Positions 1 to 64,000 of a stretch of 64,000 bases of DNA are shown here, one piece after another (within the stretch, counting starts at the first letter, position 1; each line of letters opens with the position of its first letter). The DNA is from Rebecca billardiae RCC1528 (Eukaryota > Protista > Haptophyta): the NCBI GenBank assembly GCA_965240325.2, contig OZ251225.1, positions 1-64,000 of the forward strand, given 5' to 3'. The notes below the pieces were generated by a model, which worked only from the letters and a program-made list of their open reading frames with translations, was not told the origin of the DNA and ran no database searches. A program made the translations under genes and the position numbers.

Positions 1-19
1 CCTAACCCTAACCCTAACC

Positions 20-60
<41 letters not shown>

Positions 61-77
61 CCCTAACCCTAAACCTA

Positions 78-110
<33 letters not shown>

Positions 111-382
111 ACCCTAACCCTAAAACCTAAAACCCTAACCCTAACCCTAACCTAACCCTAAAACCTAAAAACCTAAACCCTAACCCTAAACCCTAACCCT
201 AACCCCTAACCCTAACCCTAACCCTAACCCTAACCCTAACCCTAACCCTAACCCTAACCCTAACCCTAACCCTAACCCTAACCCTAACCCTAACCCTTAA
301 CCCTAACCCTAACCTAAACCCTAACCCCTAACCCTAACCCTAACCCTAACCCTAACCCTAACCCTAACCCTAACCCTAACCC

Positions 383-423
<41 letters not shown>

Positions 424-487
424 CCCTAACCCTAACCCTAACCCTAACCCTAACCCCTAACCCTAACCCTAACCCTAACCCCTAACC

Positions 488-559
<72 letters not shown>

Positions 560-561
560 CC

Positions 562-602
<41 letters not shown>

Positions 603-605
603 CCC

Positions 606-659
<54 letters not shown>

Positions 660-860
660 CCCTTAACCTAAACCTAAACCCTAACCTAACCCTAACCCTA
701 ACCCTAACCCTAACCCCTAAACCCTAACCCTAACCCTAACCCTAACCCTAACCTAACCCTAACCCTAACCCTAACCCTAACCCTAACCCTAACCCTAACC
801 CCTAACCCTAACCCTAACCCTAACCCTAACCCTAACCTAACCCTAACCCTAACCCTAAAC

Positions 861-901
<41 letters not shown>

Positions 902-1080
902 CCCTAACCCTAACCCTAACCCTAACCCTAAACCCTAAACCCTAACCCTAACCCTAACCCTAACCCTAACCCTAACCCTAACCCTAACCCTAACCCTAAC
1001 CCTAACCCTAACCCCTAACCCTAACCCTAACCCTAACCCTAACCCTAACCCTAACCCTAACCCTAACCCTAACCCTAACC

Positions 1081-1165
<85 letters not shown>

Positions 1166-1173
1166 CCCTAACC

Positions 1174-1214
<41 letters not shown>

Positions 1215-2098
1215 CCCTAACCCTAACCCTAACCCTAACCCCTAACCCTAACCCTAACCCTAACCCTAACCCCTAACCCTAACCCTAACCCTAACCCTAA
1301 CCCTAACCCTAACCCCTAACCCTAACCCTAACCCTAACCCTAACCCTAACCCTAACCCTAACCCTAACCCTAACCCTAACCCTAACCCTAACCCTAACCC
1401 TAACCCTAACCCTAACCCTAACCCTAACCCTAACCCTAACCCTAACCCTAACCCTAACCCTAACCCTAACCCTAACCCTAACCCTAACCCTAACCCTAAC
1501 CCTAACCCTAACCCTAACCCTAACCCTAACCCTAACCCTAACCCTAACCCTAACCCTAACCCTAACCCTAACCCTAACCCTAACCCTAACCCTAACCCTA
1601 ACCCTAACCCTAACCCTAACCCTAACCCTAACCCTAACCCTAACCCTAACCCTAACCCTAACCCTAACCCTAACCCTAACCCTAACCCTAACCCTAACCC
1701 TAACCCTAACCCTAACCCTAACCCTAACCCTAACCCTAACCCTAACCCTAACCCTAACCCTAACCCTAACCCTAACCCTAACCCTAACCCTAACCCTAAC
1801 CCTAACCCCTAACCCTAACCCTAACCCTAACCCTAACCCTAACCCTAACCCTAACCCTAACCCTAACCCTAACCCTAACCCTAACCCTAACCCTAACCCT
1901 AACCCTAACCCTAACCCTAACCCTAACCCTAACCCTAACCCTAACCCTAACCCTAACCCTAACCCTAACCCTAACCCTAACCCTAACCCTAACCCTAACC
2001 CTAACCCTAACCCTAACCCTAACCCTAACCCTAACCCTAACCCTAACCCCTAACCCTAACCCTAACCCTAACCCTAACCCTAACCCCTAACCCTAACC
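1..2098 (+). repeat. Telomere, (CCCTAA)n = (TTAGGG)n, about 2.1 kb
   Basis: Continuous CCCTAA array from base 1 with the C-rich strand on +, as expected at a left chromosome end. One-base indel variants are concentrated distally. Confidence 0.97.
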
Positions 2099-2716
2099 AG
2101 GCGGGCCGGCGGCATCAGCTACAGAGCAGTGGCTGGCTCTGGCGGCGAGCGCGCGCGGCGCGCGCGGCGGCAGGAGCGCGAGCGCAGCAGCGCTGGCGCG
2201 GATCGACGTGGACGCGGAGCGCGGACGCGGCAGCGCGGACGCGGAGCGACACGGACGCGGCGCGTGCGCGGGCGGTACGGCCCGGCGCAGCGCGGCACGG
2301 TGACGTCGCACGGGCATGGCTCGGCCGCCATCGTGGAAGCGTGTTGGAGTTCTCGAGAACGCAAACACGACCGTTTCATCCAGAAATTCATCACGGACGA
2401 GGACGTCCGGATTCAACGGGTACACGGATCCAGAAACCGTGTGCGACCAGCAGTTACGGCGGTGCGTCGGGAACACCTGTGATTGGTTGACGCACGGGGC
2501 GTGCGGCTCGGAATCATTGAGATTCCCCGAGCCGGGCCAGCAAACGCCGGGTCACCCCGCCGGAGCCGAAAAGAGCTCGGCGGGAGGTTAGCTTTTGCTC
2601 GTCAGAGGAGCGAGGGTCGAGATTGCCTTCGTGGGCGTCACCGACGACGCGCCCGAGGACGTGCCGGTGAGCTCTTAGCAGGGCTCGAGACGCTCGGAGC
2701 TCGCGTTTACCCAATA
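2096..2716 (+). mobile_element. 5'-truncated LTR (3' or solo) related to the copia element at 32989-40359
   Basis: Matches the reverse complement of the 721-bp LTRs from ACCAGGCGGGCCGGCGGCATCAGCTAC to ...GCTCGCGTTTACCCAATA, with a diverged middle. It lacks about the first 75 bp and is followed by host repeat rather than internal sequence. Confidence 0.9.
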
Positions 2717-2945
2717 ATATCTGTACACTCTGTATGTTTTCGCTTATTCCTCTGAATGTATCCGAATGTAGATTGTGACGGTATATTGTACACTTTGTAC
2801 ACTTCTTGATTGTACATATGAATGTACACTATTGTATACATTTTGAATGTACACATTTGTACACTTTGTACACTCTGTACACTGATTGATTGTACATATC
2901 TGAATTTATCCGAATGTACATTGCAACAGTACATCTGATGATCAA

Positions 2946-3365
2946 ATGTATCCGAATGTACAATGTAGTACATTCCAAATGTACAATGTACATTTCCGAA
3001 TGTACAATGTACATTCCAAATGTACAATGTACTACATTCCAAATGTACAATGTACACTTCCGAATGTACAATGTACATTCCAAATGTACAATGTACATTT
3101 CCGAATGTACAATGTACTACATTCCAAATGTACAATGTACACTTCCGAATGTACAATGTACATTCCAAATGTACAATGTACATTTCCGAATGTACAATGT
3201 ACTACATTCCAAATGTACAATGTACACTTCCGAATGTACAATGTACATTCCAAATGTACAATGTACACTTCCGAATGTACAATGTACATTCCGAATGTAC
3301 AATGTACATTCCAAATGTACAATGTACATTCCAAATGTACAATGTACATTCCAAATGTACAATGT
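2946..3365. repeat. AT-rich minisatellite of 20-23-bp units (TTCC(A/G)AATGTACAATGTAC(A/TACA))
   Basis: Tandem units rich in the palindrome TGTACA; degenerate units extend back to 2717. Confidence 0.95.
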
Positions 3366-3375
3366 GAGGGTGAGG

Positions 3376-4000
3376 GTAAGGGTTAGGGCGCAGGTAAGGG
3401 TTAGGGCGCAGGTAAGGGTTAGGGCGCAGGTAAGGGTTAGGGCGCAGGTAAGGGTTAGGGCGCAGGTAAGGGTTAGGGCGCAGGTAAGGGTTAGGGCGCA
3501 GGTAAGGGTTAGGGCGCTGGTAAGGGTTAGGGCGCAGGTAAGGGTTAGGGCGCAGGTAAGGGTTAGGGCGCAGGTAAGGGTTAGGGCGCAGGTAAGGGTT
3601 AGGGCGCAGGTAAGGGTTAGGGCGCAGGTAAGGGTTAGGGCGCAGGTAAGGGTTAGGGCGCAGGTAAGGGTTAGGGCGCTGGTAAGGGTTAGGGCGCAGG
3701 TAAGGGTTAGGGCGCAGGTAAGGGTTAGGGCGCAGGTAAGGGTTAGGGCGCAGGTAAGGGTTAGGGCGCAGGTAAGGGTTAGGGCGCAGGTAAGGGTTAG
3801 GGCGCAGGTAAGGGTTAGGGCGCTGGTAAGGGTTAGGGCGCAGGTAAGGGTTAGGGCGCAGGTAAGGGTTAGGGCGCAGGTAAGGGTTAGGGCGCAGGTA
3901 AGGGTTAGGGCGCAGGTAAGGGTTAGGGCGCAGGTAAGGGTTAGGGCGCAGGTAAGGGTTAGGGCGCAGGTAAGGGTTAGGGTTAGGGTGGTGGTTAGGG
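3376..4000 (+). repeat. 33 x GTAAGGGTTAGGGCGCAG telomere-variant array, inverted relative to the telomere
   Basis: Exact 18-bp period over 3376-3969 with occasional CGCTG variants, ending in GGGTTAGGGTTAGGGTGGTGGTTAGGG. Confidence 0.97.
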
Positions 4001-4021
4001 TCGCCAGTACTAAAATGAGAA

Positions 4022-4134
4022 TTTCTCGAGATTGACCGAACTGATTTCAACGAGACTTGGGCTCTGCCATGGAAATGGGAAGGGCTAAGGGCCCTCCAAT
4101 TTTGAGAGAATTTGGCTCGGTCAATCTCGAGAAA
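4022..4134. repeat. 18-bp perfect inverted repeat in the element's terminal module
   Basis: TTTCTCGAGATTGACCGA (4022-4039) and TCGGTCAATCTCGAGAAA (4117-4134) with a 77-bp spacer. Repeated at 4439-4551 and 7669-7781. Confidence 0.92.
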
Positions 4135-4145
4135 ACATACTTCTA

Positions 4146-4562
4146 GGCGCCGGTAAGGGTTAGGGCGCCGGTAAGGGTTAGGGCGCAGGTAAGGGTTAGG
4201 GCGCCGGTAAGGGTTAGGGCGCAGGTAAGGGTTAGGGCGCAGGTAAGGGTTAGGGCGCAGGTAAGGGTTAGGGCGCAGGTAAGGGTTAGGGCGCAGGTAA
4301 GGGTTAGGGCGCAGGTAAGGGTTAGGGCGCAGGTAAGGGTTAGGGCGCAGGTAAGGGTTAGGGCGCAGGTAAGGGTTAGGGCGCAGGTAAGGGTTAGGGT
4401 TAGGGTGGTGGTTAGGGTCGCCAGTACTAAAATGAGAATTTCTCGAGATTGACCGAACTGATTTCAACGAGACTTGGGCTCTGCCATGGAAATGGGAAGG
4501 GCTAAGGGCCCTCCAATTTTGAGAGAATTTGGCTCGGTCAATCTCGAGAAAACATACTTCTA
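4146..4562. mobile_element. Telomere-associated element, copy B (short)
   Basis: 13 x 18-mer (some CGCCG variants) plus the same terminal module ending CATACTTCTA. Confidence 0.75.
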
Positions 4563-5188
4563 ACGCCGTGCAGCAGCTGGAAGAGCACATCGTCGATGCG
4601 CTTGAGCCAGATCACCGGCGGCGACTCCTGCCCGCCGTGCTGCTCGACGTGGTCCAGCCACCCGCCGTGGTCGTCGTCGCGCATCTTGTGCAGCTTGTCG
4701 CGCGAGTCCTTGGCGGCGGCGGCGTTGGCGAACTTCACCTTGCAGCACGGGCACTCGAAGGGCTCGTTCTCGTGGCCCGGCACCGGCGCGTGCGCGGCGT
4801 TGAAGCAGTACTCCATGGTGCGCCAGCTCGGCTCCGCCGTCGCCGGCTCCTTCCGGCCGTTGGTGCGACGGATGAACGGCTTCCTGCCGTTGTGCTGCGA
4901 CACGCCAAGCACGCCGCGCGCGAACTCGCTGTCGCCGTTCAGCAAGAACTCGAGGTGGACGCAGCAGGAGCACTCCGAGTCGCACGGGTCGCGGTCGGGG
5001 TCCTCCACGCAGAGCTTCTTCACGCGCGTCATCTCGTACAGCACGTTGTACTCCGACCCGAGCGCGCCCGCCAGGTCGTGGTCGGAGCAGTCGAACACCG
5101 CGATCGTGTGGAAGTTCTTGGGCGCGCAGTAGCCGACTGTGAGCCCGGCGTCGCGCACGCAGATGATGGTGATCGCGCCGGCTGCGCA
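4563..5188 (-). pseudogene. Truncated exon of a putative RAG1/Transib-like DDE transposase
   Basis: Strong GC3 codon bias. Preceded by a CTAAC branch point and CAG acceptor (5189-5191). Motifs KNFHTIAVF, EFLLNGDSEFARGVLG, RT..AH..FECPCC and H...HGGQ..PP...LLH resemble the RAG1/Transib-like core (GD[K/x], Zn ligands, DxLH). Cut at 4562 by copy B. Confidence 0.45.
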
Positions 5189-5561
5189 CTGGGCGCGCAG
5201 TGGTGAGGTTAGGCCCAAAGAGACATCTACCCTGGGTGAGGTTACCAGCCGCGGCCGTTTCGGCCCAGTGGGGGCCGGCTGGGGCGGCGTGTTTGGCGGC
5301 CCAGGAGGCTCTGGGCCGGCCGAGTGGGCCGAGCTGGGCTGCCCAGAGCCTCCCAGGCCGGCTCCAGCTGGGCTGGGAGGGCTGGCGCCAGGCTGCGCGC
5401 CGGCTGCGCACTGGGCGCGCAGTGGTGAGGTTAGGCCCAAAGAGACATCTACCCTGAGTGAGGTTACCAGCCGCGGCCGTTTCGACCCGGTGGCGGCCGG
5501 CTGGGGCGGCGTGTCTGGCGGCCCAGGAGGCTCTGGGCCGGCCGACTCTGCCGAGCTGGGC
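5174..5561. repeat. 222-bp tandem duplication (about 1.75 copies)
   Basis: CGCGCCGGCTGCGCACTGGGCGCGCAGTGGTGAGGTTAGGCCCAAAGAGACATCTACCCTG starts at 5174 and again at 5396. Confidence 0.9.
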
Positions 5562-6221
5562 AAATCATTCTGAGATGGGCGGTCAAGGATCCGCTTGCGC
5601 ACGTTGACAAGGCTGGAGAGCAATCGTCCCCTCTGCTTGCTTGAGCTGTGGCATGCAATGGGTGCTGCTCTGTGCGCGCCCCCTGTGCAGGTTGAGCCAA
5701 GAGCAAGATGGGGGGGCGGGGCGGGGGCAGCTTTGACAGGTGCTCAGCGCTTGAGCTGAGCTTTGACAGGTGCTGCACTCGTCCGCACCGCAGCATACTA
5801 TTCTGCCACAGCCACTCTGCTTAGCAGCCATGCGCTTGATTTGCCCTATCAACTGTCGTTGTCATCATCGAGGTCTCGTCATCGATGATTGACAGCTCAC
5901 AGCTGCAACTCGAGATCGACTGACTGGTGCTGATGCCAACCACATTATTGAGGGATACTCCCCGCACAGAACTAGGACGTATGTACGAGCAGCTGCTCTC
6001 ACCAGTTGCTGCTCACCAGAGTCAAGTAGGACTAGGCTTCAGATGGGGGGGCGGGGCGGGGCCTGCATCGACCGGTGCTGTGCTCTGAGACTGCAGGCGC
6101 GAAAGTACGTTTTTGACTGTACATATCTGTACACTCTGTATGTTTTCGCTTATTCCTCTGAATGTATCCGAATGTAGATTGTGACGGTATATTGTACACT
6201 TTGTACACTTCTTGATTGTAC

Positions 6222-6724
6222 TGATTGGCACTTCGTGCGCTGGCGGAGGTTCGCTCTTTGGCGATGGTGGCGCAGGGGTCTCCCTGCTTCTGATATCAGG
6301 TTTTGTTGTGTGGCTGGTGTAGCTCCAGATCGCTGAGAAAAACTTTTGTAGGGTTCTCAAAAAGGACTCATCCCAGAACTTTCGTGATTAGAAAGTTTGG
6401 AGATGCTTCTCGGCTTCTGATTGCGAAGGCACGTTCTCGGAATGATCTGATAGTGCATTGCCCTGCGAAGGCTTGAGAACATCTCAGGAGCTTTGATTCC
6501 TGGATTGTTCCGCGACGCTTGTTGGCCATTATGAAATGCACGATGAATGATGATGAATGAATTGGTGCACTGGCGGTCGTGAATAAAACCGACAGTTGAG
6601 GTCGATGATAAGGTTTTGAATTGGAATGAAGCCTCAGCATGGTGGCGCTTAGAATTGCTCAGCGCCTTGAGATTGAAACCTCGAGCCGGGGAATGGCGCC
6701 AATGGCTGCCTTGGGCTTTTGACA
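6222..6724. mobile_element. Solo LTR (503 bp, TG...CA) of a second family
   Basis: Absent from the paralogous copy A (GATTGTACATATG near 2810). Flanked by the 5-bp TSD TGTAC (6217-6221, 6725-6729). Termini are TGATTG...TTGACA. Confidence 0.85.
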
Positions 6725-7789
6725 TGTACATATGAATGTACACTATTGTATACATTTTGAATGTACACATTTGTACACTTTGTACACTCTGTACACTGAT
6801 TGATTGTACATATCTGAATTTATCCGAATGTACATTGCAACAGTACATCTGATGATCAAATGTATCCGAATGTACAATGTAGTACATTCCAAATGTACAA
6901 TGTACATTTCCGAATGTACAATGTACATTCCAAATGTACAATGTACTACATTCCAAATGTACAATGTACACTTCCGAATGTACAATGTACATTCCAAATG
7001 TACAATGTACATTTCCGAATGTACAATGTACTACATTCCAAATGTACAATGTACACTTCCGAATGTACAATGTACATTCCAAATGTACAATGTACACTTC
7101 CGAATGTACAATGTACATTCCAAATGTACAATGTACATTCCAAATGTACAATGTACATTCCAAATGTACAATGTGAGGGTGAGGGTAAGGGTTAGGGCGC
7201 AGGTAAGGGTTAGGGCGCAGGTAAGGGTTAGGGCGCAGGTAAGGGTTAGGGCGCAGGTAAGGGTTAGGGCGCAGGTAAGGGTTAGGGCGCAGGTAAGGGT
7301 TAGGGCGCTGGTAAGGGTTAGGGCGCAGGTAAGGGTTAGGGCGCAGGTAAGGGTTAGGGCGCAGGTAAGGGTTAGGGCGCAGGTAAGGGTTAGGGCGCAG
7401 GTAAGGGTTAGGGCGCAGGTAAGGGTTAGGGCGCAGGTAAGGGTTAGGGCGCTGGTAAGGGTTAGGGCGCTGGTAAGGGTTAGGGCGCAGGTAAGGGTTA
7501 GGGCGCAGGTAAGGGTTAGGGCGCAGGTAAGGGTTAGGGCGCAGGTAAGGGTTAGGGCGCAGGTAAGGGTTAGGGCGCAGGTAAGGGTTAGGGCGCAGGT
7601 AAGGGTTAGGGCGCAGGTAAGGGTTAGGGTTAGGGTGGTGGTTAGGGTCGCCAGTACTAAAATGAGAATTTCTCGAGATTGACCGAACTGATTTCAACGA
7701 GACTTGGGCTCTGCCATGGAAATGGGAAGGGCTAAGGGCCCTCCAATTTTGAGAGAATTTGGCTCGGTCAATCTCGAGAAAACATACTT

Positions 7790-7816
7790 CTAACCCCTAA
7801 CCCTAACCCTAACCTA
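7790..7816 (+). repeat. Interstitial telomeric tract (former chromosome end)
   Basis: CTAACCCCTAACCCTAACCCTAACCTA in the same orientation as the terminal telomere, between the element end and the satellite. Confidence 0.85.
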
Positions 7817-9040
7817 GGCGCGCCCTCAGCCGACGCCCCCACCGCCCGCGCGTCGGCGCAGCGCTCGGCCGCACCAGCCAAGTCAGCAGTTGGGCTGACG
7901 GGCGAGATGTGCACGCTGGGGCGCGCCTCTGAGGGGCCTGACGCCACGCCCTACGTGTCGTACTCGGTCTACTGGTATTATGGAGTGGCACTGCACCACC
8001 GCTTGCTTCGGGGCGCGCCCTCAGCCGACGCCCCCACCGCCCGCGCGTCGGCGCAGCGCTCGGCCGCACCAGCCAAGTCAGCAGTTGGGCTGACGGGCGA
8101 GATGTGCACGCTGGGGCGCGCCTCTGAGGGGCCTGACGCCAGGCCCCACCGGTCAGCCTCGGTCTATCGGGGGTATGGAGTGGCACTGCTTCGCCGCTTG
8201 GGTCGGGGCGCACCCTCAGCTGACGCCCCCACCGCCCGCGCGTCGGCGCAGCGCTCGGCCGCACCAGCCCGAAGTCAGCAGTTGGGCTGACGGGCGAGAT
8301 GTGCACGCTGGGGCGCGCCTCTGAGGGGCCTGACTCCACGCCCTACGTGTCGTGCTCGGTCTACTGGTATTATGGAGTGGCACTGCACCACCGCTTGCTT
8401 CGGGGCGCGCCCTCAGCCGACGCCCCCACCGCCCGCGCGTCGGCGCAGCGCTCGGCCACACCAGCCAAGTCAGCAGTTGGGCTGACGGGCGAGATGTGCA
8501 CGCTGGGGCGCGCCTCTGAGGGGCCTGACGCCACGCCCCACCGGTCAGCCTCGGTCTACCGGTAGTATGGAGTGGCACTGCACCACCGCTTGGGTCGGGG
8601 CGCGGTCTCAGCAGACGCCCCCACCGCCCGCGCGTCGGCGCAGCGCTCGGCAGCACCAGCCAAGTCAGCAGTTGGGCTGGCGGGCAAGATGTGCACGCTG
8701 AGGCGCGCCCCTGAGGGGCCTGACGCCACGCCCCATGGTTCATGTTTGGTCTACGGGTAGTATAGAGTGGCACTTTCACCACCGCTTGGGTCGGTGCGCG
8801 CCCTCAGCCGACACCCCCACCGCCCGCGCGTCGGCGCAGCGCTCGGCCGCACCAGCCGAGTGGCAGTTGTGACGGCGGGCGAGGTGTGCACGCTGGGGCG
8901 CGCCCCTGAGAGGTCTGACGCCACGCCCCACCAGTCAGGCACTACGGTTTGTCAGTGGAATAGAGCGGCACTGCACCGCCGTAAGTTGGCTTCCGGGCGC
9001 ACGCTGGGCCGACGCCCCAAGCGCCCGCGCTTCTGCGCCC
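7817..9040. repeat. Subtelomeric satellite, about 6 units of about 195 bp
   Basis: The anchor TCAG(C)..ACGCCCCCACCGCCCGCGCGTCGGCGCAGCG recurs at 7826, 8021, 8216, 8413, 8608 and 8804 and decays near 9005. Confidence 0.93.
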
Positions 9041-10957
9041 TCTGCTTTGCTGCAGCGGAAGAAGAAGAGTCCGAGGCGCTCACTGAATACACTGTGCTGA
9101 CTCGCCAAGCCCTGACAGCGTTGCTATGATGCAGCCGCAGCCCTCTGGCTCAGCACAGTCCATCACAAGCGATGGCGCAGTGGCAGACCTCGTCAGCCTC
9201 TCCACCGGCGCCTGGCAAGCCTCGTCTCTACTATTCGCCGCCGCGCCGGCCCCGGCAGAACACGTGACCGCGCCGGCGGCCGTCAGCTGGTGCCATCACC
9301 GATGGCGCGTGCGGCGATGATTCCGATCCCACGCCTGCGCGCTGCGCTACACGTGGCGGCGCACCCGGGCGCAGAGGCGGGCTTGAGGACCGGTCGGCAT
9401 CGCGCGCGGGTGCGGGCAGCGCGCGTGCGCTTCGGCCCGCCCTCTCCGTGCACGCTCGCCGCCCCCGGCGGGGGTGCAGCCGGGCGGCGGGTGATGGCTC
9501 GCCGGGCCCGCCGATTGCCGCCAGGCTCGCGTGCTGCCGGTCGTGTGCGCGGCGCGAGTCGGCTGGAAGCCTGCATCATGCGGGCTCTCGCGAGTCAGAC
9601 GAGCAACGCGTATATGCCACCACTCCGTGCGCACCCGGCCACGCGCCCTCGGCCTCCACCGCATCCGCCGCGTGCCCTGCTGCGCGTGCTTGGCATGCGC
9701 TGCGGGGGCTAAACCACCAGTCGGTCGGCGTTGGCCATCCAGCTCGCGCGCGCTCGGCGCGCCGCACGCGATTGCCGCTCACTATTCGCGCACCAGGTGC
9801 AGTTTGGACGAAGAGCAAGATGGGGGGGGGGGGCGGGGCAGCTTTGACCAGGGCAAGGCGCTGGGCCGGCGGTGGAGCGCCCGCAGCTTCCTGGTGTGCG
9901 CTTTGCATCGAGCCACTGTGGGCAGCGAGCGCGCCGGCCGGCCGCGCGCGTGGAGCGCTCCGCTCGAGCGCGGCGCGGTCGCGGCAGCCTCGGTGCAGCA
10001 GGAGCGCGCGCGACTGAACGCGGGCTCACAAGTCCCGCCAAAGCGCGCCAGAGCAGTCGTGCCATCGGCAGCCGTGATCACCGCGCACGCGAGGCAGGTC
10101 GGACGAGACGCGAGATGGGGGCGCGGGGTGGGGGCAGCTTCGACCAGTGCGAGGCGCCGGGGCGGCTGGGCGCCCTCCGCGCGTCGCCCCCGGCGCACAG
10201 CCGCGCCGCCCTCCGACGACGCCGAGGCGAGCTCGCACCGACTTCTGCCAGCCAGCCGCGACCCCGAGTGGCGAGCCGTCACGCACGGCAACGCACGCGC
10301 GGTGCACCGGCACGGCGGAGGGGAGGTGCGCTCGCGCGGACGAGAGGGCAACGTGTGCGCGCGCAAGCGCCCCGCGTGGGGCCGCGCTTGCGCAGGCTGC
10401 TCATCGGCGCGCGTCACGCCTGCCAGCCGCTGCAGCCCCGGATCGCCTGACGCCCGTCGGCCGCGAGTCACGTCACGCGGTGCCGGCAGCTGCTCCTGCG
10501 CCGGGGGAGCGAGCACGCTCGTGCGCGTGGGGGGAAGAGCAGCGAATACACGAGCTGCCCGTGCCGTGCGCGAGGTGCCGCCGACCCGCCCTCGCGCCCG
10601 CCGTGCGCGCCGCGCGGCGCCACCCTGCGGCGAGCTCGGCTTGGTTCCCGCCCAGGCGGCCAGGCCGGTTCAGGAGATACCAGATGATAGTCATCGAAAG
10701 AAGGGCTGGTGGCGTATTTGATCTATGCTGGCGACTCTGAATCATATGCTCGTCGGCGCCGTGTTGATGAGTATTGATTGAGGTGAGTCGGCGAATCGAA
10801 TTGCGAGCGTGTTGCGCGAATCGGCACAAACGCGTTTCATTCGCCCAACATTCACCGTGATGATATGCGAAAGGATGACGAGTTTCCCCACCATGTATTG
10901 TTCGGCATCACATCACACCCGCGCACTCTCAACTCGCGATTCTCATCGACCTCGGCG

Positions 10958-32988: not shown

Positions 32989-33709
32989 TATTGGGTAAAC
33001 GCGAGCTCCGAGCGTCTCGAGCCCTGCTAAAAGCTCACCGGCACGTCCTCGGGCGCGTCGTCGGTGACGCCCACGAAGGCAATCTCGACCCTCGCTCCTC
33101 TGACGAGCGAGGCTAATCCTCCTGCCGCAACCAACTTTCGGTTGCGCAGGGTGACACGGCGTTTTGCGGCCCGGCTCGGGAATCTTGTAACCTTCCTGAG
33201 CCCCGCTTCCGTGCGTCCGCCAATCGCAGGCGTTACCGACGCACCGCCGTAAGCTCATCTTTCCCCCAGGTACTCGGTAATGTCATCGGACCTGGGTAAG
33301 CTGCGCACGGACCCATGATCCCGGATTCTCGATTCTCAAAACTGAGAATCCGGGCGTCCATGAATGAAGTGATCGAGTCCGTTGTTCCTTGGACTCTTCC
33401 ACGATGGCGCCCGCCTGTGCCGCCGGCGTGCCATCCGTGCCGCGTGCGCCGGGCCGTACCGCCCGCGCACGCGCCGCGTCCGTGTCGCTCCGCGTCCGCG
33501 CTGCCGCGTCCGCGCTCCGCGTCCACGTCGCTCCGCGCCAGCGCTGCTGCGCTCGCGCTCCTGCCGCCGCGCGCGCCGCGCGCGCGCGCCGCCAGAGCCA
33601 GCCACTGCGTAGCTGATGCCGCCGGCCCGCCTGGTGCGGCGCCGGCCCTGACGTCCCAGCGGCGACGCCATCTGCTGAGATGCGCGCCCCAGGCTGCGTC
33701 AGCTCAACA
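32989..33709 (-). repeat. 3' LTR (TGTTG...CAATA)
   Basis: Direct repeat of 39639-40359, preceded on the minus strand by the PPT. Confidence 0.96.
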
Positions 33710-33745
33710 CCCCCCCTCGACAGCCATAGCCGCGAGCTGCGCCGC

Positions 33746-36700
33746 TTACCGCGCGCGCGTCGGGTGTCGGTCCACCATGATGGCGTCGACGTGCCGCTTG
33801 AACGTCGCACCGTCCGTCGCCTTCGTCATGATGTCAGAGTGGTTGAGCGAGGTGTGTACCTTGACCACCTTCACCTTGCCACCCTCCTGCGCGTCACGCA
33901 CATAGTGATGCTTGATCTCGATGTGCTTCGAGCGCTTGTGGTGCACAGGATTCTCCACGAGGTCGATAGCCCCCTTGTTGTCCTCTCGCACCTCCGTCGC
34001 GGCCCGCGGCGGCTGCCGCATGGACTCGAGTATGCTCCGCAAGTAGCTCACCTCGCGGCAGCAATCGCTCAGCGCGACGTACTCCGCCTCCGTCGAGCTC
34101 AGCGAGACTGTACCTTGCAGCCCGCTGTGCCACGACACCGGCGCCCCATTGTAGAACACAATGTATCCACCCGTCGACCTGCCCTTGGTCTCCACCGGAT
34201 TGCTTGCCCAATCGGAGTCAGCGAAAGCAAGTAGGTCGGGGTGCTCGGAATCTGTCGCAAACTTGAACAAGATTCCCAATCGCGGGCATCCACGTAAGTA
34301 GCGCAGCACGCGCTTCGCACTTACCAGATCCACCGCCCGCGGACATGACATGCGTCGCGTCAGCATGTTCACCGCGTGCGCGATGTCCGGCCGCGCCGTG
34401 ACCATCGCAAACATGAGACATCCCACCATCGCCTGGTAGTTCTCAATCTCCGCGCGCTGCAGCAACGCCTCATCGTCGTCGCTCAGCTGCGTCCGCGCCG
34501 CCGGCTCCGGCGTGCGCGCCGGCGTGCTCGCGTTCAAACCGAACCGCTGAAGCACGCTCTCGACGTACGGCCCCAGATGCATCAGGATGCCGTCGTCATG
34601 AACTTCAAACACGGCGCCCAGGAACTTATCGAGCCGCTCACTCAGCTTGATCTCGTAATGCTCCTTCAGGTCAGCCGCCAGCTTCTCCACCGCGCGCGCG
34701 TCGCGCGTCAGGTTGAGAAACAGCAAGTCGTCGACAAAGCCGCCCGCGATGATGAACTCGCCCGGCGCCGACTCCTTGACGTAGATGCACGGCGCACTCG
34801 GACACTCCGAGAAGCCGCGCGCGAGCAGCTGGGTGCGGTGCGTGCGATGCCACGCGCGCCCAGACTGGCGTAGGCCCGGATACGCCTTCAGGCTCCGGCC
34901 CACGACTTTGTGCCCCGGCGGCGCCTGCGTGCTCGGCACGTAGCCCGGCGGGAATGAGAAGAGAGGCCGCTCATCCGGCTTCAACTCCGAGTTGAGGTAC
35001 GCGTCCTTGACGTCGCCCTTCGACAGTATGCCCAGCGCCGCAACCGACGCTGCACCCAAGTCGACTCTCGCGCCCGCCTGCTGAGCGGCGATCGCCACGA
35101 GTAGTCGCACTTGTTCCGGCCGGATCGTCGGAGCAAAGACCTCCTGAAAGTCGATCCCCGGCCGCTGTAGGTTCCCCAGTAGCACCGACCGCGCCTTGAA
35201 GCGCGTCACCTCGCCCTCCGGGTTCGACTTCACGTCAAAGACCCACTGGCTCGGCAACACCCGCGTGCCCTCCGGAACCACCACCTCCTCCGAGGTGCCG
35301 AGCAACTTGTGACCTTCCAAGTGCTCGAGCATGGCGCCCTGCCACTGGGGCGCCTCCGCCGACCGCATCGCCTCGCGATAGTTCGTCGGCACCTTCACGT
35401 TGATCTTCTGGAACACCGACGCGGCGCTGACGACGGCAGTAAGCAGCTGCGGCCGTCGGCGCGACGTCCGATCCCTGCGAAGCGGATCGTGTCCCATATC
35501 CAGGCCGGGCGGCGGCGCGTCCTCGATCACGCCGTCGTCACCGTCTGCGCCGCGCGGCGGCCCGCCAGCATCTGCTGCGGCCCCGCGCCGTGATTCCGTC
35601 GGCGGTATCTGATCCTGCCGACCCGGCTGCGTCATCGACGCGCCTGCCCCGCCACGCCCGCCCTGCGGCGTCGGCGTCGACGGCTGTGCGCCCGCGCTGC
35701 TGCACCCGCGTTGTCCCGCGTCCACGCTGCTGCGCCCGCGCCCCGACGTTGACGCATCTGCGTCGTCGTCGTACCCGACGTCGAACTCTGTCGCGTCGTC
35801 ATTCCCGGCGTCGGCTGGCGTCTCGCCGCCATCGCCGTCCTCGTCCTCACCGTCGGCGTCACCGCCGACTGGACGATGTCCGCCGCTTACCGCGGCGCCG
35901 TCACCATCACCCACGTACGCGCCACCGTCAGGTGCGCCCAGCGACGAGTGCCCCCCCTCGACCAGGTCGGTCTCGTCGATGCGTACGTCACGTGAGTGAA
36001 CGAGACGTCCGTCGTCTAAACGACATACGTACCCGAGTACGTAGCGCCATGTACCGCGCCACTGCACGCCGTGCCCACCCCAGAGATAGACACGTCCGGG
36101 TAGTGCGCGCTGCCTCAGCTGCCCCAATGCATTGCGCCGTGCGCCCAGCATCAGCACGCGGCAGCGCGCTCCAAACGCCACGTGATGCTTCCACGTCGGG
36201 CGTTTGCCAAAGAACAGCTCATCCGGCGTGAGCCACTCAATGTCGCCATCGTCACGAATGATACCACGTGACGCCAGTCGATTGCGCGACGCGCATGCGT
36301 GCCACGCCGCGTAGTGCCAATCGACCCTCGAGACTCCACGCGCAACGACCGTGGCGCGCAGTCTCGACTTCAGCGTGCGGATAGCGCGTTCCGCCACGCC
36401 ATTCGAGCTCGGCGAGTCGGGCGCCGACGTGACCGTCGACGAGAACCCAAGCTTCGCCAGCTCACCCTCGACGTACGTACTCAGCAGCGTCGAGCCACCG
36501 TCGGTGTGAATATGGCGTCGCGCCATAGTACACCCCGACGCCAGGACCCAATGCGACATGTGCATGGCCCCTGTACCAAGCAACTGCGCGTACCAGCGGA
36601 ATGCCCGACCAACCTCGGCGTCATCCAAGCTGCGTAGCGCGTACACTTGCCATCGACGTGAATGCCCATCGATGAATATGATCCCATGAGGATACCCTCC

Positions 36701-37030
36701 ACGCGCGCCATCGGCCCCAACTGGTAAGTCGATGCGTGCCATGGAGAAGATGTCGACGTGCGTCACCTGCCCAGGGTAGTGCGCCGTCGGCATTGCGTCC
36801 GCGAACGGCCGCCGCGTCATGCCCGCCGCCGACTGCTCGTCGAGCGACTCACGCCGCGCGTTCGCCCCCTCCATCCCCTCGGCCACGCGTCGCGTGCGCT
36901 CGAGTAGACGTTGGTCATTGGTGCCCGTTCGAACCGACCAAGTGCGCAACCACGCCGGATCAGCGCCTCGCGCCGCCTCCGTAGTGTTTGTGGTTCGCAC
37001 CTGCGCGGGTTCCGGGCTTAGGCGTTTGGG
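33746..37030 (-). CDS. pol: Copia Pol ORF2: integrase, reverse transcriptase, RNase H
   Basis: IN: HVD, HTDGG, NGVAERAIRTL. RT: WVFDVK..FKARSV, DVKDAYL, GLRQSGRAW, FVDDLL. RH: FADSDWA, STEAEY, EDNKGAI, KHIEIKHHYVR, SDIMTK. Lies in the -1 frame relative to ORF1. Confidence 0.93.
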   Translation of the reverse strand, partial: PKRLSPEPAQVRTTNTTEAARGADPAWLRTWSVRTGTNDQRLLERTRRVAEGMEGANARRESLDEQSAAGMTRRPFADAMPTAHYPGQVTHVDIFSMARIDLPVGADGARGGYPHGIIFIDGHSRRWQVYALRSLDDAEVGRAFRWYAQLLGTGAMHMSHWVLASGCTMARRHIHTDGGSTLLSTYVEGELAKLGFSSTVTSAPDSPSSNGVAERAIRTLKSRLRATVVARGVSRVDWHYAAWHACASRNRLASRGIIRDDGDIEWLTPDELFFGKRPTWKHHVAFGARCRVLMLGARRNALGQLRQRALPGRVYLWGGHGVQWRGTWRYVLGYVCRLDDGRLVHSRDVRIDETDLVEGGHSSLGAPDGGAYVGDGDGAAVSGGHRPVGGDADGEDEDGDGGETPADAGNDDATEFDVGYDDDADASTSGRGRSSVDAGQRGCSSAGAQPSTPTPQGGRGGAGASMTQPGRQDQIPPTESRRGAAADAGGPPRGADGDDGVIEDAPPPGLDMGHDPLRRDRTSRRRPQLLTAVVSAASVFQKINVKVPTNYREAMRSAEAPQWQGAMLEHLEGHKLLGTSEEVVVPEGTRVLPSQWVFDVKSNPEGEVTRFKARSVLLGNLQRPGIDFQEVFAPTIRPEQVRLLVAIAAQQAGARVDLGAASVAALGILSKGDVKDAYLNSELKPDERPLFSFPPGYVPSTQAPPGHKVVGRSLKAYPGLRQSGRAWHRTHRTQLLARGFSECPSAPCIYVKESAPGEFIIAGGFVDDLLFLNLTRDARAVEKLAADLKEHYEIKLSERLDKFLGAVFEVHDDGILMHLGPYVESVLQRFGLNASTPARTPEPAARTQLSDDDEALLQRAEIENYQAMVGCLMFAMVTARPDIAHAVNMLTRRMSCPRAVDLVSAKRVLRYLRGCPRLGILFKFATDSEHPDLLAFADSDWASNPVETKGRSTGGYIVFYNGAPVSWHSGLQGTVSLSSTEAEYVALSDCCREVSYLRSILESMRQPPRAATEVREDNKGAIDLVENPVHHKRSKHIEIKHHYVRDAQEGGKVKVVKVHTSLNHSDIMTKATDGATFKRHVDAIMVDRHPTRAR

Positions 37031-39639
37031 GGCGGCGCAGCGCCAACGCGCCCCCGCCCCGCGCCCACGCGCCGCACTGGCGCCCTGCGCCGTGCGCGCT
37101 GCTCCGCCGGCGCATCGCCGACGTCCGGCCCCACCTGGCGCCGTACAATCTCGGCGCGCAGCGTGGAATCGCGCGGTAGCTGCACGACGCCGCCTCCCAG
37201 CGCCGTAAAGTCCGCAGTGTTGCCGCGCTGCGAGTAGTGGAACTCGATGCCTGCGTCCGCGCAGTGCTCGACCGACAGCAGCGGCGCCGTGACGCGCCGC
37301 GACGCCCACGCCTCGATCTCGAGCGTGAGGACCTTGTCGCTGTCGTCGTCCGCCGCAAGCTTGACCACCAGGGTCCCGCGGTGAGTGACCCGCTCCCGCG
37401 CACCGTTCCCCCACTCGATCTGACATGCGCCGTCCACCGGGGTAAGATTCGTCAAATCCTCGGCCATGGCGATGTTCTTCCGTGCGCCAGTGTCAAACAC
37501 CAACGCCCGCGTGTTGTCCTCCGGCTGCGCCACGCGTGCCTCGGCCGCCCGCGCCGCGACGATCTCGATGTCCTCGTCGCGCTGCGCCCTGCCGCCGATA
37601 GCCGCGCCAATAGGCGCCAAGCCGAGTCCGGCGCCGGTGCCGCCGCCGTCTCCGGCGTCTGCGCCACCGTCGCCACCAACGGCGCCGTCGGGCTCGTCAC
37701 CCTGCTCGGGAGCGAACGCGACCTGCGTGCGGACCGTGCCGCCGCCGTTGCCATTACCGACCACGGCGCGGGTGCTCCCCCCGCTGCCGCCGCCGCCACC
37801 GCTGCCGCCGCTCCGCAGTGAGCCACGGCTGCGATCCGACCGCGTCGACGCCGCGTCATCGCCAGCGTTCGAGTCGCGATCAGCCTGCGTCACCTGCGGG
37901 CAGTAACGCTTGATATGCCCCACGGCGCCGCACTTGTAGCAGCGCGGCCCGTGCGCGTCGTCGGAGTCGCCGTGGCCTCCGCGGCCGGTGCCGCGGCCAG
38001 CACCGCCGCCACCGCCGCCGCCGCGACCTCCGCCGCCGCCACCACGGCCAGCCGGCGACGTCGCGTCGCCGCCGCCGCCACCCGCCGACGCCGCCGCCGC
38101 CTGCGCCAGGCGGAGCCCGTCGATTGGGTGCGCGCGGGTAGCGCCGCCGCCTCCTGGCGTGCGGCCACCCGCCCCTGGGCGCCCAGGGCCGCCGCGGTCA
38201 ACCCGCTTGCCCTTGGAGAAGTCCCAGTCCTCGAACTTGCCGTTGAGCTCGTGCACGAGCTCCTGCACGTCGAAGTTCGTCACGGTCCTGTAGTCCTTCG
38301 ACTCGTACCGCGTCCGCATCTCGATGCCCGCGCCCACCGGCGGAATGAACTCGATGAGCCGCGCAAGCATCTCCGCCGCTGGCGCTGCGTCACTCAGCTC
38401 CTGCAGCAGCACGTGGTTGTGCTGTAGCACCTGGAAGAGCTCGAGTGCGCCGACGCCGTCCTTGCCGCAGTCCGGCAGGACCGTCCGATGCCAGCGTGCC
38501 CGCACCGACATGTACTTCCGCATGTCGTCGGGCTTGCGCATGCGCAGGATCGTCTTCCACAGGTACAGAAACTCGCGCCCCGGCGTAAGTGCGCCCCGGC
38601 GCGCGCGCTCCTCCTGCACCTCCGGCTGCGTCTCCATGAGGCGGTTGATGTGCTGCCACGCAGCCTCCGTCACCCACGACCGCAGCTCGGTGCGTAAGAA
38701 AGCCGTCCCTTTCTCGTACTGCGCCCCGGCGTACTTGGCGGGGTCCGCCTCGTCGCCGTCCGGCGCTGCCTCCAACACGCTCTGTCGGAGCTTTATGTCC
38801 AGCATGGCGTGCTCGCTCGCCTGCCGCTCATACATCTGTTCCTCGGTCTCGCGCTCGCGGCGGTAGAGCTCGCGCGCGCGCGGATCGAGCGTCACGGCAG
38901 CGCCGCCCGCGGGCGCCGCGCCACCGATCCCGCCGGCGCCGCCCGTAGGCGCTGCGCCGACGCTGGCGCCGCCCGCAGGCGTCGCGCCGTCAGTCCCAGC
39001 CGGCGCACCTGCCGCGCCGCCTGTGCCCACACCCGGACCGGGTGTACCGGCCGCCGGACCCGGAAAAATTCCGGATCCGCCGCCCGCCGCCGGACCTGAA
39101 CCCGGTCCGGTCGCCGTCGGGCCGCCCGGAGTGGCTAAACCACTCCCCGCGCCCGCCGAGGCAGCCTGCGCGTAGCTTGGCGCCTGCCTCGCCCCCGCCG
39201 CCGCCGCCGCGCGTTCCGCCGCGGCCCGGCGCTCGGCGTGCTCGCGGCGCTCGTGCTCGTGGCGATGGTCGAGCAGCCGCTGCTGCAGCGCGTAGTTCTC
39301 ACGCGCCAGGTCCATCCGCTCGGCACTGACCTTGATCATCTTCGCCGCGGATGGGTTGAATGTCTCCCACGTCGAGTTGTACTCCTCGAGCGTGTTGATG
39401 CGGTGCTCCGCGTTCGGGCCGTGCGTCACGATGATGCCGTTCAGTGCGGACATCGTAGCACCTTGCCCCGCCGGAAGCGCCGCCAGCCTGCTCGCCGATT
39501 GCGCGAGCCAGCGCTGCTGATTGCCCTTGTCGTTGAGCATCCCCACGTCGACCGAGCCGTGCATCCGGCCGCTCGTGCCCATCGGCGCGATCGATGAGAA
39601 AGCGCCGCGCGTACGATCCCTCCCGATCGCTGCATGCAT
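37018..39639 (-). CDS. gag: Copia Gag-protease ORF1
   Basis: Zinc knuckle CYKCGAVGHIKRYC and aspartic protease LVFDTGA followed by GNG...G. The true start may be a downstream Met. Confidence 0.9.
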   Translation of the reverse strand: MHAAIGRDRTRGAFSSIAPMGTSGRMHGSVDVGMLNDKGNQQRWLAQSASRLAALPAGQGATMSALNGIIVTHGPNAEHRINTLEEYNSTWETFNPSAAKMIKVSAERMDLARENYALQQRLLDHRHEHERREHAERRAAAERAAAAAGARQAPSYAQAASAGAGSGLATPGGPTATGPGSGPAAGGGSGIFPGPAAGTPGPGVGTGGAAGAPAGTDGATPAGGASVGAAPTGGAGGIGGAAPAGGAAVTLDPRARELYRRERETEEQMYERQASEHAMLDIKLRQSVLEAAPDGDEADPAKYAGAQYEKGTAFLRTELRSWVTEAAWQHINRLMETQPEVQEERARRGALTPGREFLYLWKTILRMRKPDDMRKYMSVRARWHRTVLPDCGKDGVGALELFQVLQHNHVLLQELSDAAPAAEMLARLIEFIPPVGAGIEMRTRYESKDYRTVTNFDVQELVHELNGKFEDWDFSKGKRVDRGGPGRPGAGGRTPGGGGATRAHPIDGLRLAQAAAASAGGGGGDATSPAGRGGGGGGRGGGGGGGAGRGTGRGGHGDSDDAHGPRCYKCGAVGHIKRYCPQVTQADRDSNAGDDAASTRSDRSRGSLRSGGSGGGGGSGGSTRAVVGNGNGGGTVRTQVAFAPEQGDEPDGAVGGDGGADAGDGGGTGAGLGLAPIGAAIGGRAQRDEDIEIVAARAAEARVAQPEDNTRALVFDTGARKNIAMAEDLTNLTPVDGACQIEWGNGARERVTHRGTLVVKLAADDDSDKVLTLEIEAWASRRVTAPLLSVEHCADAGIEFHYSQRGNTADFTALGGGVVQLPRDSTLRAEIVRRQVGPDVGDAPAEQRARRRAPVRRVGAGRGRVGAAPPPNA

Positions 39640-40359
39640 ATTGGGTAAACGCGAGCTCCGAGCGTCTCGAGCCCTGCTAAAAGCTCACCGGCACGTCCTC
39701 GGGCGCGTCGTCGGTGACGCCCACGAAGGCAATCTCGACCCTCGCTCCTCTGACGAGCGAGGCTAATCCTCCTGCCGCAACCAACTTTCGGTTGCGCAGG
39801 GTGACACGGCGTTTTGCGGCCCGGCTCGGGAATCTTGTAACCTTCCTGAGCCCCGCTTCCGTGCGTCCGCCAATCGCAGGCGTTACCGACGCACCGCCGT
39901 AAGCTCATCTTTCCCCCAGGTACTCGGTAATGTCATCGGACCTGGGTAAGCTGCGCACGGACCCATGATCCCGGATTCTCGATTCTCAAAACTGAGAATC
40001 CGGGCGTCCATGAATGAAGTGATCGAGTCCGTTGTTCCTTGGACTCTTCCACGATGGCGCCCGCCTGTGCCGCCGGCGTGCCATCCGTGCCGCGTGCGCC
40101 GGGCCGTACCGCCCGCGCACGCGCCGCGTCCGTGTCGCTCCGCGTCCGCGCTGCCGCGTCCGCGCTCCGCGTCCACGTCGCTCCGCGCCAGCGCTGCTGC
40201 GCTCGCGCTCCTGCCGCCGCGCGCGCCGCGCGCGCGCGCCGCCAGAGCCAGCCACTGCGTAGCTGATGCCGCCGGCCCGCCTGGTGCGGCGCCGGCCCTG
40301 ACGTCCCAGCGGCGACGCCATCTGCTGAGATGCGCGCCCCAGGCTGCGTCAGCTCAACA
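39639..40359 (-). repeat. 5' LTR
   Basis: Direct repeat of 32989-33709. Confidence 0.96.
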
Positions 40360-62025: not shown

Positions 62026-63247
<1,222 letters not shown>

Positions 63248-63446
63248 GTTTGTGAGCAGGAGAGATCCCGTTGAGGATGAGGGCGCTGCTGAGAGATGAT
63301 GGAGGCGGATGACACGGAGCAGGCCAGAGGTCTGTAGCGCAAGGTGGCACGTCCTCGTTTTTTTTGGGGTTTTTTTTTTTGAGGTTGCGTGCGTGCGCGC
63401 GCGTTGGGTAAGCGAGTTCGGGGGTGGGTGCGTGGGGACCTCCGGA

Positions 63447-63762
63447 CCTACAAAGGTCTGGCCCGCAAGGGCTGTGCCTACAAAGGCTGTGCCTACAAAG
63501 GTCACTGGTGTGCCTACAAAGGTCACGGATGTGCCTACAAAGGCTGTGCCTACAAAGGTCACTGGTGTGCCTACAAAGGTCACTGGTGTGGCCTACAAAG
63601 GTCACGGGTGTGCCTACAAAGGCTGTGCCTACAAAGGTCACTGGTGTGCCTACAAAGGCTGTGCCTACAAAGGTCACTGGTGTGCCTACAAAGGCTGTGC
63701 CTACAAAGGTCACTGGTATGCCTGCAAAGGCTGTGCCCACAAAGGCTGGTGGCCTACAAAGG
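63447..63762. repeat. Minisatellite of mixed 15- and 21-bp units with core GTGCCTACAAAGG
   Basis: CTGTGCCTACAAAGG and TCACTGGTGTGCCTACAAAGG units in an irregular tandem. Confidence 0.92.
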
Positions 63763-64000
63763 CTTGGCCGAAGCGTAGAGACGATGTTGCTGCAACTTGA
63801 GCGAGAGATGTGCGCCGCGTCGCCAGAGCGCGCCTCCCAGCGGAGCCGGCAACGCGTGCGCCGGTGCGAGGGCCGGATCCGGCTGCGAGCGCGACTGCAG
63901 CGCGAGCGCGACGGGCGGCGGCCGCCGCCAAACTGCGCCGCGCGACTGGCGAGCAGTCGATGCAGCGGCGTCCGTGTCTCAGCGACAAGCGCCCACCGCG

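Follow-up and report, generated by a model that had tools for sequence, protein, structure and literature searches.

How does a chromosome end come to carry three copies of the same repeat, each stopping towards the centromere at the same base? The question is raised by the first 64,000 nucleotides of contig OZ251225.1 of the haptophyte Rebecca billardiae RCC1528 (assembly GCA_965240325.2), hereafter the window, which opens with 2098 bp of (CCCTAA)n and is therefore the left end of a chromosome. The repeat, present as copies A, B and C from the telomere inwards, is a subtelomeric element of about 1.2 kb, rich in AT and non-coding, built of a TGTACA-rich region, a minisatellite, an inverted array and a hairpin with an 11-nt tail. 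Around it the genome is extremely GC-rich: GC content is 70-84% across most of the window, the nearest intact-looking gene begins at about 10.9 kb, and 2.1-10.8 kb is a subtelomeric patchwork (Table 1). We favour a reading in which the copies were added to, or captured at, chromosome ends that were free or had lost their protection, and were not inserted between two flanks, and give it a probability of roughly 0.4.

A common terminus at four junctions

The three copies have the same orientation, and an alignment of their right ends is 100% identical over the last 186 aligned columns. They part right after ...CATACTTCTA, at 4145 in A, 4562 in B and 7792 in C, and the base-precise point of divergence of all three is ...GAGAAAACATACTTCTA. 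The terminal 20-mer, CTCGAGAAAACATACTTCTA, has 3 occurrences in the window against 0 expected. In every copy the terminus faces the centromere, with one polarity throughout. A 113-bp hairpin stops 11 nt short of it, with equivalents at 4439-4551 in B and 7669-7781 in C, and folds with a minimum free energy of -54.1 kcal/mol (z -4.6; 0 of 200 shuffles).

Past the terminus each copy meets a different neighbour. Copy A is followed by GGCGCC and then by 13 further 18-mers belonging to the array of B, copy B by a coding exon on the minus strand that is cut in mid-frame, and copy C by ACCCCTAACCCTAACCCTAACC, in register through CTAA, and then by a 195-bp satellite. The sequence cut by copy B is a genuine coding exon. 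Its GC content by codon position is 0.64/0.44/0.98, where the third position has 0.98 in a host gene of the window and 0.76 in the pol of a copia element, and its codon periodicity, which begins at about 5188, stops at exactly 4563.

Public reads supplied a fourth junction. The comparison covered 3990-6864, and the matches came from three runs (X1-X3) of one sample as short, low-depth contigs. In an 81-nt contig of X1 (depth 4.4), 4531-4563 (...CTTCTAA) is followed by ten bases, GTGCCAATCA, and then by 6730-6767, which is the interior of another copy. Because these ten bases match 6222-6231 on one strand or the other, they are either filler copied from a template or the margin of a further insertion of a 503-bp element that also lies within copy C; read as AAGTGCCAATCA, the filler is a 12-mer with a single occurrence in the window. 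The same terminus is thus joined in X1 to a fourth, different flank, which makes it a reused, defined end rather than a breakpoint that arose by chance. Such an end, common to four breakpoints that are identical to the base although their flanks are unrelated, would be that of a transcript or cDNA, one cut by an enzyme, or the terminus of a transposon. X1 also contains the exon stretch 5054-5204, exactly.

If the fourth base is counted as part of the element, the terminal tetranucleotides over the four junctions are CTAG, CTAA, CTAA and CTAA; the bases after the terminus are G, C, C and G, with T in none. Telomere-like sequence extends for 22 nt at C, and is just CTAAC at B, CTAA at the X1 junction and CTA at A. 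Every junction, read along the outward strand, has ...(T)TAG and then AAGTATG, and the 8-mer GCGCCTAG is common to the A/B junction and the old healing site in the satellite. Both features would suit either an element that itself ends in ...CTAA or a seed made by telomerase in its first round, to which the element was then joined.

We regard a mis-joined or over-expanded repeat stack in the assembly, an artefact that the earlier note on this DNA had itself raised, as very improbable. The region is repetitive, and the X1-X3 contigs, short and of low depth, do not span 4145/4146 or 4562/4564 and so neither confirm nor refute the assembly at the A/B and B/exon junctions. The copies are, however, not simple duplicates: three array units in B carry a private GCGCC variant, the arrays of A and C differ in length, and the 503-bp insertion has its own target-site duplication (TSD). 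Each junction is a unique sequence, and the terminus is seen as a breakpoint in independent reads.

The earlier note had described three copies in one orientation sharing an exact end base, an innermost end that overlaps a CCCTAA tract through CTAA, a copy B that cuts an open reading frame (ORF), a copy A that cuts the array of B, and no visible reverse transcriptase (RT). All of these observations were borne out, the last by a Pfam search of the ORFs in 2-8 kb. Its picture of a discrete unit with a base-precise terminus facing the centromere, uniform polarity and an innermost copy on a buried telomere seed likewise holds. The note had also given the copies different distal ends and, with them, a pattern of fixed proximal and variable distal ends. 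Here the fixed terminus stands at four junctions or more, and B is visibly truncated; distal truncation is seen for B alone, since the edge of A at 2717 is that of a copia long terminal repeat (LTR) and the left end of C is placed by base composition at about 6101.

Breakage, healing and proposed addition at the chromosome end

Two rounds of breakage and healing are demonstrable at this chromosome end, one at 7814/7815 and the other at 2096-2098. At the latter a break within a copia LTR was capped by the present telomere, which is joined to the LTR with a 3-nt overlap, ACC. This LTR matches those at 32989-33709 and 39639-40359 with 92% and 86% identity; its 3' edge at 2716 reads ...CCCAATA, and the insertion of the element to which it belonged made the left edge of copy A (putative TSD ATATC).

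Taken together, the observed junctions, their uniform polarity, the repeated use of one terminus and the two sites of healing form a pattern that suggests end-directed addition and that ordinary nested transposon insertions could also produce. If copies were added to ends, each junction would have been the chromosome end at the time of its formation. The donor would have been either a free linear DNA copy that was end-joined or an RNA on which an RT acting in trans, primed by a free 3'-OH, began copying at the 3' end. Such addition is supported by the variety of the four flanks (copy array, exon, telomere seed, and X1 filler with copy interior), by the single polarity of the copies, by the two healed breaks, and by the finding that all but one of the four junctions adjoin a telomere tract or an older copy, as expected if the target is a chromosome end. 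Every flank, whether the 22-nt seed, the cut exon, the cut older copy or the cut LTR, would then resemble an eroded or broken end. The sequence ...(T)TAG next to AAGTATG is in keeping with priming by a 3' end in TTAG, or with a telomerase seed of the first round.

The order of events can be proposed as follows. A break in the 195-bp satellite would have received a telomere seed, and copy C would have been joined to this short seed, whose ...TTAG-3' overlaps the ...CTAA of the element. More DNA, the gene fragment included, would then have been acquired distally; a break in the exon would have received copy B, and a break in the array of B copy A. After copia had inserted into A, a break in its LTR would have been healed by telomerase, giving rise to the present telomere.

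Several points weigh against end addition. Neither RT, ribozyme nor A-tail was found among the ORFs of the locus, in the Rfam scan or at the terminus. The evidence base is one chromosome end and one short contig, the available reads being short, low-depth contigs that do not span the stack, and the left end of the element is undefined, as A is cut by copia and that of C is placed by base composition. To account for the host-like exon on the distal side of the buried telomere, one more event of capture or recombination must be assumed; the exon's position means that other DNA was also imported, whether by capture, by recombination or by gene capture of the Helitron type. A series of nested insertions with later terminal truncation would, moreover, give an identical pattern of right ends only.

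This last route would begin with nested insertions of a non-autonomous transposon, most plausibly Helitron-like (rolling-circle), and end with distal loss. B would have entered the gene fragment first, followed by A within B and copia within A; a break in the 3' LTR of copia would then have removed the left halves. When a nested cluster loses its terminal part, right ends are all that can remain, and the copia LTR at 2096-2716 is such a case. A canonical Helitron starts with 5' TC and ends in CTRR, with a short GC-rich palindrome about 10-12 nt upstream of that end; the four terminal tetranucleotides, with the fourth base counted in, would fit CTRR, and a hairpin ending 11 nt before the terminus would be Helitron-like in position. 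Helitrons are expected to leave no TSD, the host exon beside copy C would fit gene capture, and Helitrons are known at telomeres and subtelomeres (PMC11934779). On the other hand, the base after the terminus is never T, which departs from the canonical target between A and T, and the hairpin is far bigger than a Helitron 3' palindrome. Single polarity, together with stacking in or beside copies or a telomere tract, would demand strong self- or end-targeting. The flanks of C are unrelated, with no telomere repeats on its distal side, and no RepHel was detected in the window. We favour end addition over nested insertions, which we consider possible though rather unlikely.

A TIR (terminal inverted repeat) and TSD of the kind left by cut-and-paste transposons or miniature inverted-repeat transposable elements were not found for copy C. 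The best match between its left and right ends, 11 nt with one mismatch, was not significant (p ~0.02 by shuffling, with a better match elsewhere). Its two flanks are unrelated to each other, and nowhere are there paired flanks such as a simple insertion would leave. A 7-nt target duplication around C, AGGCGCG, was considered and rejected, the left flank of C having no homology to the 195-bp satellite; its presence on both sides is probably chance in GC-rich DNA.

Subtelomere shuffling of the yeast Y' type is a further alternative, which we judge improbable. A short or broken end would invade an internal telomere tract bordering a copy, on the sister chromatid or another end, and break-induced replication would copy outward. 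Copy C does lie directly on the 22-nt internal tract; the host-like exon and a paralogue of the motif pair at 9.8-10.2 kb, both distal to the old telomere, point to imported DNA; and A and C are identical, as after recent conversion. However, at the junctions other than that of C telomere-like sequence is limited to CTA, CTAA and CTAAC, 3-5 nt at most and too little for homology-driven invasion, and the breakpoints are base-identical all the same. The 10-nt filler at one junction is typical of end joining or template switching, not of homologous recombination.

Searches for coding capacity returned little. No RT, Rep or transposase domain was detected by Pfam in any sizeable ORF in 2-8 kb, and the sole RT in the window is the RVT_2 of copia at 33.7-37.4 kb; a Penelope-like element (PLE) that was 5'-truncated or non-autonomous would equally be without an ORF for RT at the locus. 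A cmscan of 2000-9000 against Rfam (E<=1) detected neither a ribozyme, hammerhead or other, nor any family that reached its gathering score; all matches were sub-threshold, miRNA-like and on repeats. The terminus of the element, ...CATACTTCTA(A), has no A-run, and the element contains no ORFs; for an ORF running through it, a homologue search was empty, and an exact look-up of eight ORFs found none on record. Metagenome DNA scans with a 22-nt pattern of the terminus and a two-unit 18-mer pattern gave no match.

A more specific form of end addition would be a long shot. The element might be an RT-less end-capping parasite or helper, with an RNA ending in ...CUUCUAA after a large hairpin and copied onto chromosomal 3' ends in (T)TAG. 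In this reading the targets would include breaks freshly seeded by telomerase with a first partial repeat, and the copier would be telomerase itself switching template, or another RT in trans. The whole would be a telomerase-coupled system of terminal addition in a haptophyte, running alongside normal telomeres.

Should terminus-specific addition be true, the locus would be a natural record of broken-end repair in a telomerase-positive protist, with the repair layers kept in order: seed, element, break, element, retrotransposon and healing. Telomere-attached elements would then extend to the haptophytes, in a form without an enzyme of its own, and the junctions would predict that TTAG 3' ends are extended with AAGTATG.... 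If the stack is instead a nested Helitron-like cluster with a terminal deletion, it would be an ordinary, neat example of the accumulation of transposable elements (TEs) in a subtelomere and of telomere healing.

Copies, insertions and neighbouring sequence

Table 1 Features of the chromosome end and of the intact copia element in the window
Feature	Position	Strand	Description
Terminal telomere	1-2098	+	(CCCTAA)n with variants, period 6, 343 copies; left end of the chromosome
5'-truncated copia LTR (3' or solo)	2096-2716	+, sense	Lacks the first 74 nt of the LTR
Copy A	2717-4145	+	AT-rich TGTACA-rich part, minisatellite, 18-mer array, 150-bp unit
Copy A, AT-rich TGTACA-rich part	2717-2950
Copy A, 20/41/85-bp minisatellite	2951-3365
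Copy A, 18-mer array	3366-3995		35 units of GGTAAGGGTTAGGGCGCA
Copy A, 150-bp unit	3996-4145
Hairpin of the 150-bp unit	4022-4134	+	18-nt perfect arms, 4022-4039 and 4117-4134, with 77 nt between
Copy B	4146-4562	+	Only 14 array units, array-to-unit transition and 150-bp unit; distal side cut by the terminus of A
Host-like coding exon fragment	4563-5188	-	Cut at 4563 by the terminus of B; acceptor-like CAG at about 5189-5191
GC-rich non-coding block	5189-6100		Between the target exon of B and copy C
Copy C	6101-7792	+	Left end placed solely by the GC drop at about 6100; identity to A from 6123
TG...CA insertion in copy C, 503 bp	6222-6724	+	TSD TGTAC at 6217-6221 and 6725-6729; copy A is the empty site
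Buried telomere seed, ACCCCTAACCCTAACCCTAACC	7793-7814		Plus strand, with the C-strand orientation of the terminal telomere; between the terminus of C and the satellite
195-bp subtelomeric satellite	7817-8938		5.7 copies; first monomer broken at the start of the telomere seed
Intact, young copia element	32989-40359	-	LTRs of 721 bp, identical; TSD TAATA; RVT_2 and zinc knuckle

Outside the arrays, and the 503-bp insertion in C aside, copies A and C are 100% identical, which implies that the events were recent. Their identity opens at 2717 = 6123 because the copia insertion cuts copy A there. The 18-mer GGTAAGGGTTAGGGCGCA corresponds to GGTTAG repeated three times in degenerate form; its G-rich strand is the top one, so that it is inverted relative to the telomere. 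Within the arrays (3375-3995 and 7184-7629), a GCGCT variant recurs every 8-9 units in A, with a similar pattern in C. The GCGCC variants stand at the three distal-most positions of B, and since they are private to this copy its immediate source differs from that of A and C.

The 503-bp insert in copy C looks like a solo LTR. When it was excised in silico and C compared with A, a 5-nt gap remained. A diverged copy of the insert in X1 leaves the window sequence exactly at 6724/6725, confirming the boundary, and as this copy has a different 3' flank in the X1 contigs the insert belongs to a repeated family, probably of LTR type, that favours AT-rich islands.

The LTR fragment next to the present telomere and the copia at 32989-40359 are related members of distinct subfamilies (86-92% identity, with an internal indel). 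In the intact element the gag and pol ORFs overlap near 37.0-37.4 kb, and an exact database look-up of pol found no record. As an observation in its own right, two de novo telomere-addition sites are found at one chromosome end (window 2090-2105 and 7810-7820).

For the exon cut by copy B, homologue searches with queries of 353 and 208 amino acids found none, Pfam detected no domain and a sequence search of the PDB was empty. An AlphaFold model was discarded as unusable (predicted local distance difference test, pLDDT, of 39). A language model hints at a resemblance to RAG1/Transib- or Plavaka-type transposases, a mere lead.

Just upstream of the exon lies a 222-bp tandem duplication, 5174-5339 and 5396-5561 (166 nt aligned at 95%), which shows no codon periodicity and is therefore probably intronic or non-coding. 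A G-rich motif of about 60 bp (...AGATGGGGGGGCGGGGCGGGG...CAGCTTTGAC...) occurs at 5675-5737, 6011-6079, 9787-9848 and 10083-10150. These occurrences form two pairs of similar spacing, one on the distal side of the satellite (336 bp) and one on its proximal side (296 bp), and their arrangement suggests a duplicated subtelomeric block. Elsewhere in the window, an AT-rich island at 62028-63764 contains (AT)46, (TG)36, a 265-bp repeat pair (62188-62452 and 62983-63247) and 21/36-bp minisatellites, and may be another repeat or a landing pad for TEs.

Comparison with known systems

The earlier note had proposed terminal addition primed by the chromosome end, a telomere-targeting DNA transposon or Helitron-like ends, any of which would be an unrecognised system remodelling chromosome ends. 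No domain or feature points to retrotransposon, HUH or DDE chemistry. At the locus the TIR is not significant, the flanks of C are unrelated, and the ORFs yielded no RT, Rep or transposase domain. An unrecognised system is not claimable from one chromosome end, and both telomere-attached elements, such as endonuclease-deficient PLEs and HeT-A/TART, and telomeric Helitrons are already known kinds (PMC8557442, PMC11934779). The element would appear to work like a telomere-attached element. It cannot be filed among the PLEs, the Drosophila telomeric retrotransposons or the Helitrons, because RT and ribozyme were not found, the junctions depart from the A-T target rule of Helitrons, and TIR and TSD are absent.

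The yeast Y', a subtelomeric block spread by recombination, may bear a likeness to the element. Blocks such as the Sultan arrays of Chlamydomonas (PMC8287924) are likewise tandem, in the same orientation and with the proximal edge on a short internal telomere tract. The element differs in that it has no ORF and that most of its junctions lack a telomere tract yet are base-precise.

Helitron-derived repeats accumulate in the subtelomeres of Hydractinia, and Helitrons are found at the telomeres of D. biarmipes (PMC11934779). With non-autonomous Helitron and Helitron2 elements the repeat would share a CTRR-like tetranucleotide, a hairpin about 11 nt upstream, the lack of a target duplication, a possibly captured exon and internal tandem repeats. 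It differs in a 3' flank that is never T, a hairpin with 18-bp arms around 77 nt, its single polarity and the lack of a RepHel partner in the window.

HeT-A, TART and TAHRE of Drosophila (PMC5537684), and the endonuclease-independent addition of long interspersed elements at chromosome ends, form terminal stacks of head-to-tail copies in which the proximal 3' end is fixed and distal truncation varies, a picture that our stack resembles. Unlike the non-LTR elements HeT-A, TART, SART, TRAS and Zepp, the present element is short and non-coding, without an oligo(A) tail, gag or RT, and unlike Drosophila the alga has a normal telomerase-type telomere.

Endonuclease-deficient PLEs (Athena, Coprina) attach to exposed G-rich telomeric overhangs, and their 3' end carries short reverse-complement telomeric repeats beside a structured RNA motif (PMC8557442). 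They differ from our element in that no RT ORF is visible here and Rfam detected no hammerhead or other ribozyme, while a real telomere tract is present at only one of four junctions and a long inverted telomere-like array is part of the element. The resemblance would lie in the stacking of the copies and in the end of copy C, where hairpin, 11 nt and (CCCTAA)3.5 follow one another towards the centromere. By this analogy, endonuclease-deficient PLEs would be the closest functional counterparts of the element, with the telomeric retrotransposons of Drosophila second.

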